The notes beneath the pieces are model-generated. The model did no database searches and had not been told where the DNA came from. It worked only from the letters and a program-made list of their open reading frames with translations. 64,000 nucleotides of DNA from Macrostomum lignano (taxonomy: Eukaryota), in the NCBI GenBank assembly GCA_002269645.1, contig NIVC01000038.1, positions 124,001-188,000 on the forward strand, written 5' to 3'. The position numbers and the translations under genes were made by a program. Within the stretch, counting starts at the first letter, position 1, and each line of letters begins with the position of its first letter. This document shows positions 1-63,135 of this stretch, piece after piece.

Positions 1-3000
1 GGCGGCAGGTGCACCGACGGTGTCAGAAACTACACCTGCGACTGCTCTCGCGTCGACTTCCAAGGCGACACCTGCAGCTCCAAGATCGATGACTGCGTGT
101 CGAGTCCGTGCCAGCACGGCGGCAGGTGCATCATCGATGGTGTCAGAAACTACACCTGCAACTGCTCTGCCACCGACTTCTACGGATCGAACTGCCAGAG
201 CCGCATTGACGACTGCGCCAGCAACCCGTGCAGCCACAACGCCACCTGCGTTGATGGGCACAGAGACTTCAGCTGCAGCTGCTTCAGCGGCTACTCAGGA
301 AAGACCTGCTCCGATGACGTGCAGGACTGCTCGCCGAATCCGTGCCAGTTCGGTGGCGCCTGTCTGCAGCGCAGCAACCCGGCTCTGTATGGAAACTCAC
401 CGCTGCCAGCGCCGTTCAACGGCAGCTTCAGCTACGCGCTGGCTGCCGGATTCGTCTGCCTCTGCCCACATGGTGAGGAGGTCCGGTATCATATTTACTG
501 TGCAGATTCCAATCTAAAATAATTTTTATCTGACTGCTACAGGTACCCACGAAGACAACTGCTCCATCAACCCGAACGACTGTCTGGATCCGGCCACCAA
601 CCGCAGCGTGTGCGCTCACGCGTCGAGCTGCACGGACGGCCTGGCCTCATTCACCTGCCACTGCCTGCCCGGCTACGAGGGCCCGACCTGCTCAGTCGAC
701 ATCAACGAGTGCGAGCGGTTCGGACAGCCGTGTAGGAACGGAGCCGTCTGCAAGGACCTGGTAGCGGATTATGCCTGCACCGGCTGCCCTGCTGACTATA
801 CGGAGGCAAAAACTGCAGCGTCAGACTGACTGGCTGCGACTCCAGCCCATGTCACATAAATGCTACTTGCGAGCCGCTGCTTCTTCGCGAGCTGCCGTCA
901 CCTGCTCACGGCTACCGCTGCACCTGCAAGCCTGGCTGGTCTGGACCGCAGTGCAACGAGACCACTCTGGCGTCATTCAACGGGACGTCCAGTTTCAGCG
1001 CCAATTTTAGTACAACAGCTGACTGCAACTTCGAGCTGTCATTTCGCACGAGTGTCGCTCACTTCGATCTGGTCCGGCTCTCGTCTCACTGGGGAGACAT
1101 CCGAGTCGGCGCTCACGACTCCAGTCTCATGCTGTTGTTCTTCAATGCCTCATCGTCTGTGATTGGTCAAGCCGCTTGGCCAATCAGTGCCAGCTTGGCC
1201 TCTACTGATTGGCTGACACTGTCGGTCTCGCTGACCAATGGCAGAGCGACATTGAGTCGCAGTGAGTCAGGAGTGAGTCAGACGCCTGGAGCACAGCTGG
1301 TCGACGGATTGTCGAACTCATTCAAGCCGAACAGTCGAATGTCAGTTCGTGTCGGCGTCGAGAGCGGATCCGGGATCGACGGCAGCGGCGGCTTTCGCGG
1401 CTGCGTGAGAGACCTGAGGCTCGTGACGGACGATTCGATGATCGTCGCTACGGAGACCACGACAGAGTCGAGCAACGCGACCTGGGGAGTCTGCAGTCGG
1501 TGCAGTGCGGCAGCCCGTCTTGTGAAGCAAAGACGAGCTCGATGTGCTCAGATGTGTGGAACGACTTTGTGTGCCACTGCGCTGCGGACTTCGGAGGCCT
1601 GCGCTGCTCCGTTGAGCTTCCATCGTTCTCACTGGGTGTGGGCGGCAGCGTGTCATCAACGATCTCCGCGTCTGCAGCAGGTGTGTCAAGTGTGTATGGC
1701 GGAGACTCGTGGACGATTGAGCTGAGGCTGGTGACTTTGTCTCGAGGAGCGTTTCTGCTGCTGCTGGGCAACCCGAGCGACTCAGCGACCACTCCGAGAC
1801 TGCTCGCTACAGTCAGTGTCCTTGTGGTACTCCTCTGTAGATGTTCAAGGTTTTTACACTCGTAAAGTCAATTTTTCTTTAAAATCTTTTCAGATCGATC
1901 ACTCTGGTCGTCTGTCCGCCCAGTTACTGCACGGCAACGGCTCCTCATCGCAGCGCTGACGTCATCAGACTCTTGGCCACCGGCAGCTTCGTCTTCGTGA
2001 AGATCTCCGTGTCGATATCGGGTCGCTCGCTGTCGCTGTCAGTGTCATTTCAGTCAGGTCGGCATCGCTGAGCAGTGGGAGTCCGCTGCCGCAGCTGTCA
2101 GGCCAGCTCATCATCGGCGGCTTCAGCGGTCTTCGAGCAGCCCGGCTCCGTCGCCGATTCCACAGGCCGGGCGCTTCGAGAACAAAGAGATCGGCAGATG
2201 TCGCGCTGTCCAGAGTTGCTTCAGCGGCAGGAAATGTCACCGCGTTTCGAGGCTCGCTGAGGTCAATCAAGGTGAACGGTGACACTCCACTGATTTTGGT
2301 TGCTGGGAATGACGGCTTCGAGGGCCTCACAGGTGCCGTGGTAGCCAGCGAGTCGACAGAGATTGTCCCAGGCATTTTCAACAATACCGTGTGCGAAGAG
2401 TTTCGACCTTGTAGAAATGGAGCGACCTGCACTAACGGGCTCTACTATTCGTACCGGTGAGTTTATTGTCAATGTCTTTAGTTAAACACTTCTGCTGCAG
2501 TCCATGGCTAATCTGCATTGATACCACGGATGCCTCAATTTTAGCTGCGTTTGCCACCCGGGCTACTCGGGCGAGGACTGCTCCGTCGACCATCCCGACT
2601 GCAGCTCGAATCCGTGCGGCGCCGACTCGTTCTGTCTGGAGCGAAGCATTGAAGCTTTGTACAGCAATGCGTCCAGCCTGGCGCCGTTCAACGGCTCCTT
2701 CAGCTACTCGAAGGCTGCCGGCTTTGAGTGCGTGCGCATGATGGCACGACTGAGACTGCCGCCAGTAGTGAGGCTGCCGCCAGTAAGTAGTGAGGCTGCG
2801 CTAGTAAGTAGTGAGACTGCCGCCAGTAAGTAGTGAGGCTGCTGCCAGTAAGTAGTGAGGCTGCCGCCAGTAAGTAGTGAGGCTGCCGCCAGTAAGTAGT
2901 GAGGCTGTCGCAGTAAGTAGTGAGGCTGTCGCCAGTAAGTAGTGAGGCTGCTGCCAGTAAGTAGTGAGGCTGCCGCCAGTAAGTAGTGAGGCTGTCGCCA

Positions 3001-4924
3001 GTAAGTAGTGAGGCTGTCGCCAGTAAGTAGTGAGGCTGCCGCAGTAGTGAGGCTGTCACTAGTAAGTAGTGAGGCGTCACTAGTAAGTGGTGAGGCTGCT
3101 GCCAGTAAGTAGTGAGGCTGCCGCAAGTAAGTAGTGAGGCTGTCGCCAGTAAGTAGTGAGGCTCCGCCCAGTAAGTAGTGAGGCTGCCGCCAGTAAGTAG
3201 TGAGGCTGCCGCCAGTAAGTAGTTAGGCTGCTGCCAGTAAGTAGTGAGGCTGCCGCCAGTAAGTAGTGAGGCTGCCGCTAGTAAGTAGTGAGGCTGCCGC
3301 CAGTAAGTAGTGAGGCTGCTGCCAGTAAGTAGTGAGGCTGCCGCCAGTAAGTAGTGAGGCTGTCACTAGTAAGTGGTGAGGCTGCTGCCAGTAAAGTAGT
3401 GAGGCTGCCGCCAGTAAGTAGTGAGGCTGCCGCTAGTAAGTAGTGAGGCTGCCGCCAGTAAGTAGTGAGGCTGTCACTAGTAAGTGTGAGGCTGTCACCA
3501 GTAAGTAGTGAGGCTGCCGCCAGTAAGTAGTGAGGCTGTCACCAGTAAGTAGTGAGGCTGCCGCCAGTAAGTAGTGAGGCTGCCGCTAGTAAGTAGTGAG
3601 GCTGCCGCCAGTAAGTAGTGAGGCTGCCGCCAGTAAGTAGTGAGGCTGCCGCCAGTAAGTAGTAAGGCTGCCGCCAGTAAGTAGGGAAGCTGCCTTAGTC
3701 TTAGAGGGATTAAATGCAGTCAATGAAATTGAATTTCAATAATGTCTGGCTTGTTGGTCAGCAAAATATGAGTTTACTTTAAGCGAATGTAAACTTTTTT
3801 ATTGCCCGCTAGCAACTTGTGTCAAAAACCGTGTCACAAGATTTGATCGTTGCGATGCCACGATGCTCATACTTCAATAGTCTCATTCAATCGAACCCTT
3901 TACCTATTACAGATGACTTTCTTTCCACTTGGCCAATTGCGGCCATTGCTGTGGCAATCTTCTTATTTGGAGTTCTTCTGACAGTTTCCGTGTTCCTCCT
4001 GCTGCTAAACCGGCATCGAAACGTGGGTCTTTGCACGCCAGTCATTTCAATAAAACCCTACGAGTATATACAAATGCCTAATTATCATCATAAATATAAT
4101 TTTCAGGGCAAGCTGTCACTTGGATATTTCGAGAGACAGGTATTCCCTCTATTATCGTAAAACTGTCAAAATTATTGTATATTTACTGATTAGATATTGT
4201 TTATTTACGTTTGAGGCCCCCGTTCTGGAGAATGCGAAACGAAGAAGTGCAGCGAAGGTTTTGAGCGATCTGAGAGACCGTCTGAGCTCGCGCAGTGAGC
4301 ACACCTACCTGACATCCGACAGGCGTCCGGTGAGACCTCTGCTCCCAGTCATGCTGATGGCCTCATCATGAAAAATATTGTGACACTATAGCCTGATTGT
4401 ATCTGCTTAAGCAAGTTCTTGGCATAAATTTGTTAAAATGTACTTTTGCTAAAAAGTGTAACGTTTAGAGTTTAAATATTTTAACGAGCCAGATGGATGG
4501 ACAGATTAGTAGATTTAGTATCTAGGTACGAGTGTAGATGAAGAAATGAATTATATTTTGTACACTAATAACTACTAACTTCATGAATTTGCAGCAAATA
4601 TCTACCGTCGAAAGGTACGAAATGGCTCCATACGATGTGATCAGCGATGCGGAGACAAAGCCAGATGAAGTCTCTCCTGAGCAGGTTTGCTACTCGCAAT
4701 TGATTGATTTGCCTACCAGAAAGAGTTGCGCTGAGCAAACTGTGAGCAGCAATTCCTGCTTCAACCCGCTGTAGGAAGTCGAACCTGCGGCCGGCTCCAA
4801 TCGGTTCAACAGCGAGCTGTCATCAGCCTACGATGTGATCCCGGACCTGACGGCGAGCCAGAAGCAGCAGAACCAGAGAGCTGCTCAGCAAGTCAAGAGC
4901 AATCAACCAGAGGAGTACTGCTGA
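1..4924 (+). pseudogene. Copy A (5'-truncated by window edge) of Crumbs-ectodomain / Tyr-motif-tail receptor; frameshifted. Exons <1-472, 543-1811, 1894-2456, 2545-2782, 3913-4022 (TM), 4107-4139, 4216-4329, 4595-4684, 4775-4924
   Basis: Ca-binding-type EGF repeats (DDCASNPCSHNATC...), two LamG-like domains, TM exon (DFLSTWPIAAIAVAIFLFGVLLTVSVFLLLLNRHRN) and GT-AG sites match copies B-D. Indels vs paralogs: +2 nt near 798, -4/-3 nt near 1500-1520, several single-base deletions in 1940-2180, -1 near 2747. Some of these could be long-read consensus errors. Confidence 0.8.
2753..3695 (+). repeat. 22-bp minisatellite (GTAAGTAGTGAGGCTGCCGCCA)n, ~42 units, at the exon/intron junction before the TM exon
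   Basis: Direct tandem repeat visible; no unique spacers. Confidence 0.97.
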
Positions 4925-62381: not shown

Positions 62382-62737
62382 TCTAATTACTAACAAATAA
62401 TACATTGAATTTACAGGAAATCTCTACCGTCGAAAGGTACGAAATGGCTCCATACGATGTGATCAGCGATGCGGAGACAAAGCCAGATGAAGTCCCGCCT
62501 GAGCAGGTTTGCTACTCGCAATCTGTTTGCCTACCAGAAAGAGTTGCGCTGAGCAAACTGTGAGCAGCAATTCCTGCTTCAACCCGCTGTAGGAAGTCGA
62601 AACTGCGGGCGGCTCCAATCGGTTCAACAGCGAGCTGTCATCAGCCTACGATGTGATCCCGGACCTGACGGCGAGCCAGAAGCAGCAGAACCAGAGAGCT
62701 GCTCAGCAAGTCAAGAGCAATCAAAAAGAGGAGTGCC

Positions 62738-63135
62738 GCTGACTGCTGACTGCTGACTGCTGCCTGCTGACTGCTCACTGCTGACTGCTGACTGCTGACT
62801 GCTGACTGCTGACTGCTGACTGCTGACTTCTGACTGCTGACTGCTGACTGCTGACTGCTGACTGCTGACTGCTGACTGCTGACTGCTGACTGCTGACTGC
62901 TGACTGCTGACTTCTGACTGCTGACTGCTGACTGGTGACTGCTGACTGCTGACTGCTGACTGCTGACTGCTGACTGCTGACTGCTGACTGCTGCCTGCTG
63001 ACTGCTGCCTGCTGACTGCTGACTGCTGACTGCTGACTGCTGACTGCTGACTGCTGCCTGCTGACTGCTGACTGCTGACTGCTGACTGCTGACTGCTGAC
63101 TGCTGACTGCTGACTGCTGACTGCTGACTGCTGAC
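62738..63135 (+). repeat. (CTGACTG)n microsatellite at the stop codon of copy D
   Basis: Visible; paralogous to 4919-5255. Confidence 0.97.

Follow-up and report, generated by a model that had tools for sequence, protein, structure and literature searches.

A Macrostomum lignano gene array that most likely joins a Crumbs-derived ectodomain to a lineage-restricted tail with tyrosine motifs

Introduction

Can the ectodomain of a polarity protein be carried on an entirely different cytoplasmic tail, and what would such a tail do? The question is raised by a 64,000-nucleotide stretch of the genome of the flatworm Macrostomum lignano (assembly GCA_002269645.1, contig NIVC01000038.1, positions 124,001 to 188,000; hereafter the window, all coordinates being those of the window unless stated), in which a preliminary description had seen a tandem cluster of Crumbs-like receptor genes with an inhibitory type of signaling tail. 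Few short tails in animals are as conserved as the cytoplasmic signature of Crumbs, a FERM-binding motif together with a C-terminal ERLI, and a Crumbs ectodomain with the whole tail swapped would be a natural experiment on the role, so far poorly understood, of the ectodomain by itself (for example, adhesion, homophilic binding, or ligand recognition), apart from polarity signaling. M. lignano is tractable for transgenics and RNA interference (PMC5730564), which makes such a family testable.

The window most likely holds part of a lineage-specific tandem array, with at least five copies in a higher-order repeat, of genes for type I membrane glycoproteins that combine a Crumbs-derived ectodomain with a novel tyrosine-motif tail. 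Invertebrate genomes commonly contain EGF-repeat proteins that have expanded in tandem within one lineage and carry novel tails; what is new here is that a Crumbs-derived ectodomain stands on a lineage-restricted tail of this kind. The array itself is real and had been read correctly, but the immune, inhibitory, and "diversifying" parts of the earlier interpretation exceed the evidence.

Array layout and gene models

Six-frame motif searches recovered all of the tail and ectodomain peptides quoted in the preliminary description, in four sets on the plus strand, and the four head-to-tail copies that the description had proposed end at stop codons at 4922-4924, 29631-29633, 43616-43618, and 62740-62742. 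By self-BLAST, the four units are 93-95% identical across exons and introns. The count of four is limited by the window: a fifth copy, whose signal-peptide exon and that of copy 2 are 100% identical, starts ∼6 kb 3' of the window, and the spacer 3' of copy 4 repeats the spacer 3' of copy 1, minus a long interspersed nuclear element (LINE). Therefore, the array runs past the window and contains a higher-order repeat. The DNA is eukaryotic, with G+C-rich, exon-like islands across the window, and its best protein matches in a database search were M. lignano proteins at 85-90% identity.

Gene models were built by enumerating GT/AG joins between consecutive open segments, which gave three full models (copies 2, 3, and 4) with GT-AG at every placed junction; intact open reading frames (ORFs) within the window were found in copies 2 and 3 only. 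Copy 2 (17560-29633, plus strand) is intact, with 13 exons and a single terminal stop, and encodes 1312 amino acids (aa). Its exons lie at 17560-17656 (signal peptide), 17724-18011, 20631-20823, 21545-21889, 25123-25562, 25635-26905, 26981-27549, 27639-27877, 28631-28740 (transmembrane, TM), 28825-28857, 28934-29047, 29304-29393, and 29484-29633. Copy 3 (35918-43618, plus strand) is likewise intact, with 12 exons and 1188 aa (35918-36014, 36757-37017, 37830-38022, 38980-39419, 39492-40771, 40846-41414, 41504-41742, 42538-42638 (TM), 42718-42750, 42828-42941, 43289-43378, and 43469-43618); it is without the 345-nt exon 4, has a different signal-peptide exon, and is more diverged in its TM segment and tail.

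The remaining two copies are broken as assembled. Copy 1 (1-4924, plus strand) is cut at its 5' end by the window edge; compared with copy 2, its EGF and LamG exons contain nine indels that break the frame, and its tail exons are intact. Its exons are placed at <=1-472, 543-1811, 1894-2456, 2545-2782, 3913-4022 (TM), 4107-4139 (micro-exon), 4216-4329, 4595-4684, and 4775-4924 (stop). Copy 4 (50006-62742, plus strand), which corresponds to GenBank gene BOX15_Mlig022007g1 (protein PAA92815.1), has the same exon chain as copy 2: 50006-50102, 50192-50449, 51148-51340, 51905-52132, 52758-53197, 58073-59351, 59427-59995, 60082-60320, 61547-61656 (TM), 61741-61773, 61858-61971, 62417-62506, and 62593-62742. 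Its frame is broken in exon 6 by a 7-bp deletion relative to copies 2 and 3 (near 58290, within ∼58280-58300), in the EGF module that precedes the LTGC junction. Because this deletion breaks the frame, the TransDecoder-based GenBank model (PAA92815.1; P0003) is truncated to 593 aa and starts at an internal Met at 58875. The indels of copies 1 and 4 may reflect real decay or residual indel error, the assembly being a PacBio/Canu assembly polished with Pilon (PMC5730564). The older-assembly model P0285 was considered as an arbiter for copy 1 and rejected, its first unit being copy-2-like rather than copy-1-like.

The preliminary description depended on expression of the tail exons, and PAA92815.1 bears on this point. 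It carries the same exon chain as our models, and its last two exons are 100% identical to those of copy 4. Because the BOX15 models come from a StringTie/TACO/TransDecoder annotation of RNA sequencing (RNA-seq) data (PMC5730564), the proposed expression and splicing of the tail exons are borne out. The phase-0, 33-nt micro-exon that encodes GKLSLGYFERQ (28825-28857 in copy 2, plus strand; 4107-4139, 42718-42750, and 61741-61773 in the others) is present in the GenBank model; it may be alternatively spliced, because the UniProt/WormBase models (P0162, P0163, and P0285) skip it.

Public annotation of the array is inconsistent and partly chimeric. A second GenBank gene call, a 1313-residue EGF/LamG product, overlaps the 593-aa model and spans L001 1-23868, that is, from window position 48875 to ∼8.7 kb past the window end, and in the older UniProt annotation the locus is represented by fused models, one of 3471 aa and one of 6620 aa, named "Notch" and "EGF-like domain-containing protein". 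An exact-sequence look-up found no record of the spliced proteins of copies 2 and 3. The models given here correct the truncated 593-aa "hypothetical protein" of GenBank and the fused UniProt models to two intact genes of 1188 and 1312 aa.

The ectodomain

The encoded proteins consist of a signal peptide, a run of EGF modules, LamG, EGF, LamG, EGF plus a second insert-type EGF, a TM segment, and a 133-aa tail. Cysteine-pattern counting gave 13 EGF modules before the first LamG domain (LamG1) in copy 2, 12 in copy 4, and 10 in copy 3; these differences amount to the presence or absence of one phase-1 exon. Pfam recognized nine EGF stretches and one Laminin_G_2 domain, with LamG1 below threshold (E = 0.015). 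An AlphaFold model of LamG1, computed from an alignment with homologs (predicted local distance difference test score, pLDDT, 74.8; predicted template-modeling score, pTM, 0.70), has a predicted fold that matches neurexin LNS, laminin LG, agrin, and CELSR1 structures with probability 1.0. The domain order of the preliminary description, with its 10-13 EGF modules, is thus reproduced in copies 2-4, with LamG1 identified by predicted fold, but only in part in copy 1, whose signal peptide is not visible because the 5' part lies beyond the window edge. The window protein also contains seven POGLUT-type C-x-S-x-(P/A)-C sites.

Two elements of this ectodomain had been named as Crumbs hallmarks. The insert-bearing EGF (25430-25562 in copy 2, plus strand; CLERSNQNLYGNSPLPAPFNGSFSYALAAGFVCLC) is common to canonical invertebrate Crumbs (C[YL]ERSN..LY...), as is the EGF-LamG junction (25900-26020 in copy 2, plus strand; GGKNCSVRLTGC...C.ETTLASLNG), which canonical Crumbs has as GGKNCSV.L.GC ... 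TT.SFNG and bird CRB1 in a weaker form. In the first database search, the non-flatworm matches that covered the LamG block were all unnamed metagenome or transcriptome proteins, and these carry the CxERSN..LY insert-EGF and the GGKNCSV.L.GC junction; matches to Eys, Notch, and fibropellin reached the EGF part only. Within a sample of 115 matches, neither motif occurred in Eys, Notch, fibropellin, Delta, or DNER matches, both being confined to Macrostomum proteins and Crumbs-like matches.

The identity of the unnamed matches was provided by their 90%-identity clusters, which contain the full-length proteins P0120 (2286 aa; C-terminus ...GHYRPAKQE...PPEERLI) and P0139 (2346 aa; ...RGTYSPSRQE...PPPEERLI), together with a member named "protein crumbs" and bird CRB1. 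Residues 49-1080 of copy 2 are collinear with residues 695-1700 of P0139 (32.5% identity, E = 2e-138). The models have the signal peptide and TM segment, and the EGF and LamG repeats, of the type I membrane protein by which Crumbs is in part defined (PMC5968619), and all examined non-flatworm matches that cover the LamG domains trace to Crumbs rather than to other EGF/LamG families. Consistent with the preliminary description, the ERLI-tailed cluster-mates, the collinear alignment, and the hallmark motifs together indicate that the ectodomain descends from Crumbs.

As aligned, the window protein matches the middle part of a canonical invertebrate Crumbs (EGF run, insert-EGF, EGFs, LamG, EGF, LamG, EGF). 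The N-terminal third of Crumbs, the third LamG, and the membrane-proximal EGF run are absent. Directly 5' of the TM exon, exon 8 (27639-27877 in copy 2) is a truncated internal duplicate of the insert-bearing EGF, to which it is identical at 29 of 52 residues. Out of this duplicate, a new TM exon, and four small exons, the C-terminal end of the gene has been rebuilt.

The cytoplasmic tail

The spliced tail reads NRHRN | GKLSLGYFERQ | APVLEN...TSDRRP | QISTVE(R/K)YEMAPYDVI... | EVEPAAG...SAYDVIPDL..., with exon boundaries marked by bars. This is exactly the tail of the preliminary description in copies 1 and 2, but copy 3 is somewhat diverged (NLHRN, APVMENVKRR, and EHNYLTSDKHS) and copy 4 ends in ...KEECR and not, as copies 1-3 do, in ...EEYC or ...DEYC. 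At the extreme C-terminus we observed a 7-bp satellite (ACTGCTG / GCTGACT; 4917-5268 and 62738-63149) that begins at the stop codon, or immediately 3' of it, in copies 1 and 4, the last codons of which run into the satellite; it may explain the variable C-terminal ends (EYC, ECR, and ECC).

Crumbs proteins are defined by a tail of <40 aa with a juxtamembrane FERM-binding motif, RxxxGxYxPS, and a C-terminal class II PDZ-binding ERLI (E/D-R/K-L/I-I/L), and both motifs are conserved from sponges to bilaterians (PMC5968619). As a reference we retrieved 120 canonical tails, all 120 of which have both (G[TKH]Y.P and ERLI). The window tail is polar, probably disordered, and, at 133 aa, longer than the Crumbs limit; RxxxGxYxPS is absent from it, the juxtamembrane sequence being NRHRNGKLSLGYFERQ, and no ERLI followed by a stop was found in any frame of the window. 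A hidden Markov model (HMM) of the 120 canonical tails scored the window tails at the level of 3000 shuffled decoys (p = 0.10 and 0.76). The same test disposed of a vestigial FERM-binding motif, suggested by a superficial resemblance of NRHRN-GKLSLGYFERQ to RNKRATRGTYSPSRQE. Because the tail has neither the FERM-binding motif nor ERLI, the window proteins fail the published Crumbs signature.

The preliminary description had named an absence of tail homologs outside this lineage as a point that would support its claim, and the searches agree with such an absence. No Pfam domain was found in the tails, a word-indexed search with the tail returned three short M. lignano entries only, and an exhaustive phmmer/HMMER scan of 1.84 billion representatives returned only the tail's own cluster, with no homolog outside M. 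lignano. Across these databases, the tail thus appears lineage-restricted as well as non-canonical. A search with the canonical-tail profile for an M. lignano crumbs gave 253 candidates, short ERLI-ending fragments of which none was named Macrostomum, in a search so shallow that the seed proteins themselves were not recovered. In the literature, nothing specific was found on Crumbs in Macrostomum or planarians, or on these gene identifiers.

A paralog of the array proteins has a different tail again. Gene BOX15_Mlig017317g1 (PAA90326.1; P0001) lies at L002 10001-12765 on contig NIVC01000114.1, where, over the 10-kb flanks examined, it is a single gene. Its ectodomain is the same Crumbs-derived one, with the duplicated insert-EGF before the TM segment and 85% identity across the LamG region. 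Four exons encode its tail, which is polar and tyrosine-rich (YDRI, YAGVYE, and YDNL); homology to the array tail was considered and rejected (p = 0.79), and the two tails differ in exon layout. In M. lignano, the same ectodomain therefore stands on at least two unrelated tails, so that members of the family have either swapped tails or come to differ in them too much for any relationship to be recognized, and Tyr-Asp-x-aliphatic motifs recur on an independent tail.

Tyrosine motifs

Six tyrosines are present in the array tail, two of them in YDVIxD motifs that stand 36 residues apart: APYDVI, encoded at 29340-29351 in copy 2 (4631-4642, 43325-43336, and 62453-62464 in copies 1, 3, and 4), and SAYDVI, encoded at 29538-29549 in copy 2 (4829-4840, 43523-43534, and 62647-62658), all on the plus strand. 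The same 12 nt (TACGATGTGATC) encode both motifs in all copies, with no synonymous variation. The motifs had been described as invariant in the four copies, which is correct but uninformative, because 77% of the tail positions are invariant and the motif codons lack synonymous variation. Because the 12 nt are identical in the two motifs, the repeat may be a micro-duplication; a duplication of exons 12 and 13 as its source was rejected, since there is no similarity outside YDVIxD (p = 0.12).

The motifs were compared with known patterns. For the immunoreceptor tyrosine-based inhibitory motif (ITIM), SAYDVI fits the consensus (S/I/V/L)xYxx(I/V/L), as reported earlier, but APYDVI, which had been called a near match, does not, having Ala at -2; and at least one ITIM match was found in 21% of composition-preserving shuffles of the tail. 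Both motifs fit the YxxPhi sorting signal (Y-x-x-(L/I/M/F/V)) in a polar tail, a match that is not distinctive because two or more occur in 29% of the shuffles. A repeated Yxxx tetrapeptide, in contrast to these consensus matches, occurred in 0.3% of shuffles, and the exact YDVI(x)D repetition is thus unusual. Known SH2 ligands include pYEEI for Src and YDxV for Nck (PMC3507883); against the Nck type, the two Y-D-V-I motifs have the consensus Asp at +1, and Ile instead of Val at +3. Read against these ligands, Asp at +1 appears more typical of Src- and Nck-type SH2 ligands, and YDVI is also a plain candidate YxxPhi sorting motif. Overall, the tail is a tyrosine-motif tail; ITIM is one of several readings of it and not the most likely, and the claim of an ITIM-bearing signaling tail comes down to a single pattern match.

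Selection and divergence

The array had also been likened to diversifying allorecognition clusters. Nei-Gojobori estimates of the ratio of nonsynonymous to synonymous substitution (dN/dS) between copies were 0.39-0.60 across the N-terminal EGFs, the LamG block, and the tail. In 80-codon windows, two reached dN/dS ∼1, resting on 3-9 changes, and none was convincingly above 1. Mismatches amounted to 4.5-6% in exons compared with 13-17.5% in introns, so that the exons are about three times less diverged, also in the broken copies. These data come from the assembly of one inbred line. They contradict the notion of a diversifying cluster: a tandem multigene cluster is present, but a hypervariable domain under diversifying selection between paralogs is not. 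The array is young and under moderate purifying constraint, and some of its copies appear to be decaying.

Discussion

The identity and anatomy of the array are, in our judgment, very likely as described here. The explanation that we favor as a whole, which adds a mechanism to that anatomy, is probable, and its mechanistic part, that the YDVI motifs are phosphotyrosine docking sites for SH2 proteins, is tentative. In this explanation, the Crumbs-like ectodomain would serve as an adhesion or recognition surface. The tail would be unable to recruit Stardust/Pals1, Par6, or ERM proteins as Crumbs does, and would instead present two identical YDVIxD motifs as putative phosphotyrosine docking sites. 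Because of the acidic +1 and aliphatic +3 residues, ligands of the Src or Nck type would be preferred over SHP-type ITIMs, and the protein would resemble nephrin-type adhesion receptors more than inhibitory immunoreceptors. An endocytic or sorting role of YxxPhi type would be nearly as likely as SH2 docking, and the two are not exclusive.

Several points weigh against this explanation. Phosphorylation and binding of YDVI are predictions from the motif, and the +3 residue is Ile, not the Val of the Nck consensus. Because identical 12 nt encode both motifs in all copies, the repeat could reflect micro-duplication, and its invariance recency or gene conversion, rather than function. Two of the four window copies are frame-broken as assembled, which may mean either that some of the array has no function or that indel errors are present in the PacBio-based assembly. 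The family may stand beside a canonical crumbs gene, or it may be all that M. lignano has of the Crumbs type.

The array proteins were compared with several known systems. With Crumbs, CRB1, and CRB2 they share type I topology, EGF and LamG domains, the ∼1000-residue collinear alignment, the insert-EGF, the GGKNCSV.L.GC junction, and the POGLUT-type sites; unlike these, they have two LamG domains (Crumbs has three or four) and a tail of 133 aa rather than <40 aa, they lack the N-terminal third, the membrane-proximal EGF run, RxxxGxYxPS, and ERLI, and their genes are tandem and multi-copy. A replaced ERLI end has a precedent within the Crumbs family in CRB3-CLPI, which has non-polarity functions (PMC2064851). 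However, CRB3-CLPI arises from an alternative last exon of the same gene and keeps the FERM-binding region, whereas the array tail is wholly different and much longer and has five exons of its own, and the window showed no exon that encodes ERLI. The YDxV tails of nephrin and Tir, which dock the SH2 domain of Nck (PMC3507883, PMC4238058), resemble the array tail in combining an adhesion-type ectodomain, a disordered tail, and repeated Tyr-Asp-x-aliphatic motifs; the array tail differs in having Ile and not Val at +3, only two motifs, and no sequence homology, and docking is proposed by analogy of motif. To ITIM receptors and invertebrate allorecognition clusters, the likeness consists in the ITIM fit of SAYDVI and in tandem clustering; unlike those systems, the array has no Ig- or lectin-type ectodomain, a motif match at chance level, no hypervariable domain, and no dN/dS above 1.

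Two rival explanations concern what the tyrosine motifs do. An ITIM-type inhibitory tail, which would recruit SHP-type phosphatases through phosphotyrosine in SAYDVI (and APYDVI) in a diversifying, immune or allorecognition-like cluster, is very improbable. The consensus fit of SAYDVI, the multi-copy tandem genes, and the EGF number, variable from 10 to 13, are all in keeping with it, and the 36-residue spacing of the two tyrosine motifs would be suitable for a protein with tandem SH2 domains. However, one pattern match is what a fifth or so of shuffled tails (21%) yield and the second motif has Ala at -2; Asp at +1 is not known to be preferred by the SH2 domains of SHP-1/2. The EGF-number difference is one phase-1 exon and not sequence diversification, dN/dS stays at 0.39-0.60 in all regions without a hypervariable segment, exons are more conserved than introns, and nothing in the analysis points to an immune or allorecognition role. 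It is somewhat unlikely that YDVI acts unphosphorylated as a YxxPhi signal for the mu subunits of AP-2 or AP-1, in a tail that would serve trafficking and not signaling, on a constitutively recycling or polarized-sorted receptor of the adhesion or scavenger type. Tyrosine-based sorting motifs are found in EGF-repeat receptors such as DNER, and here both motifs are exact fits, lie in a polar, probably disordered tail far from the membrane, and are repeated non-randomly; yet the consensus alone is weak (two or more matches in 29% of shuffles), and the flanking acidic residues (YDVIxD) are at least as typical of kinase substrates and SH2 sites.

Two further rivals concern the genes themselves. 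They might be fast-evolving Crumbs orthologs of an M. lignano that has no canonical crumbs and that maintains apical polarity through a diverged tail. In keeping with this, their best non-flatworm relatives are canonical Crumbs proteins, an ERLI-tailed M. lignano protein appeared in none of the searches (the profile search being shallow), and the second paralog, P0001, likewise has a non-canonical tail. We nevertheless consider it quite unlikely: both signature motifs, invariant in 120 of 120 canonical tails, are absent, the ectodomain is truncated and rebuilt rather than a full Crumbs, and the search for a canonical gene was shallow (253 candidates, seeds not recovered) and does not demonstrate absence. 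Alternatively, the array could be largely a neutral by-product of a highly duplicated genome, with most copies decaying as pseudogenes and the motifs functionless. The nine frame-breaking indels in copy 1 and one in copy 4, the LINE and many satellites interspersed in the array, and YDVI codons without synonymous variation all agree with such a history, as do the 180 Mb of the genome in duplicated blocks of at least 95% identity (PMC5730564). Set against this are two fully intact copies of 1188 and 1312 codons with canonical splice sites, an exon divergence of about a third of that of introns, in the broken copies as well, dN/dS below 1, an RNA-derived gene model, and the chance that the single-base deletions of copy 1 are residual PacBio errors; on balance, neutrality is very improbable.

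If the SH2-docking explanation is extended to the whole family, a Crumbs ectodomain would have been detached from the Crumbs/Stardust/ERM machinery, re-wired to phosphotyrosine signaling, and amplified as a tandem family with interchangeable tyrosine-motif tails. This larger scenario is speculative and, at present, unlikely; if true, it would mean that a flatworm-specific receptor system for cell contact or partner recognition was built from a polarity protein.

Repeats and neighboring features

Between copies 1 and 2 lies the G+C-rich LINE-type retroelement (7018-10957, minus strand), in which Pfam recognized ORFs for an AP-endonuclease (8574-10136), a reverse transcriptase (7018-8433), and a weak PHD-like domain (10247-10957), also on the minus strand. 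The paralogous spacer 3' of copy 4 does not contain the LINE, which was therefore inserted after the higher-order duplication.

A 22-bp minisatellite (AGTAGTGAGGCTGCCGCCAGTA) of 19-43 units lies between exon 8 and the TM exon in all copies (2764-3694, 27859-28313, 41724-42134, and 60302-61212); it is intronic, because its period is not divisible by 3 and its reading frames are closed. Satellites with periods of 21, 23, 12, and 11 bp were found at 19015-20395, 33182-34670, 45098-45588, and 12724-13021, respectively. Such long arrays create spurious ORFs of 300-500 aa on both strands, and the large ORFs at 18994-20502, 33177-34472, and 44631-45611 were rejected as genes, being translations of the 21-, 23-, and 12-bp satellites. 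Intron 2 of copy 2 contains the 21-bp array, which is also found in the fifth copy, past the window end.

Between copies 3 and 4, a frameshifted relative of the copy 3 signal-peptide exon was observed at 47300-47404; ∼1 kb 3' of it, at 48344-48882, come an EGF-like stretch (QRCELDCADCSSNPC) and an ORF that clearly encodes a TM segment (AVTIVLGVAFGALGIVVLSVIAPAVFTAAY). No Pfam match was obtained in the fragments at 47300-48882, which may represent either a family member in decay or an independent small gene of signal peptide, EGF, and TM segment. Finally, the introns of copy 4 contain an inverted microsatellite pair, (TCTA)n at 54068-54444 and its reverse complement (AGAT)n at 62127-62382, which are 99% pure and ∼8 kb apart.

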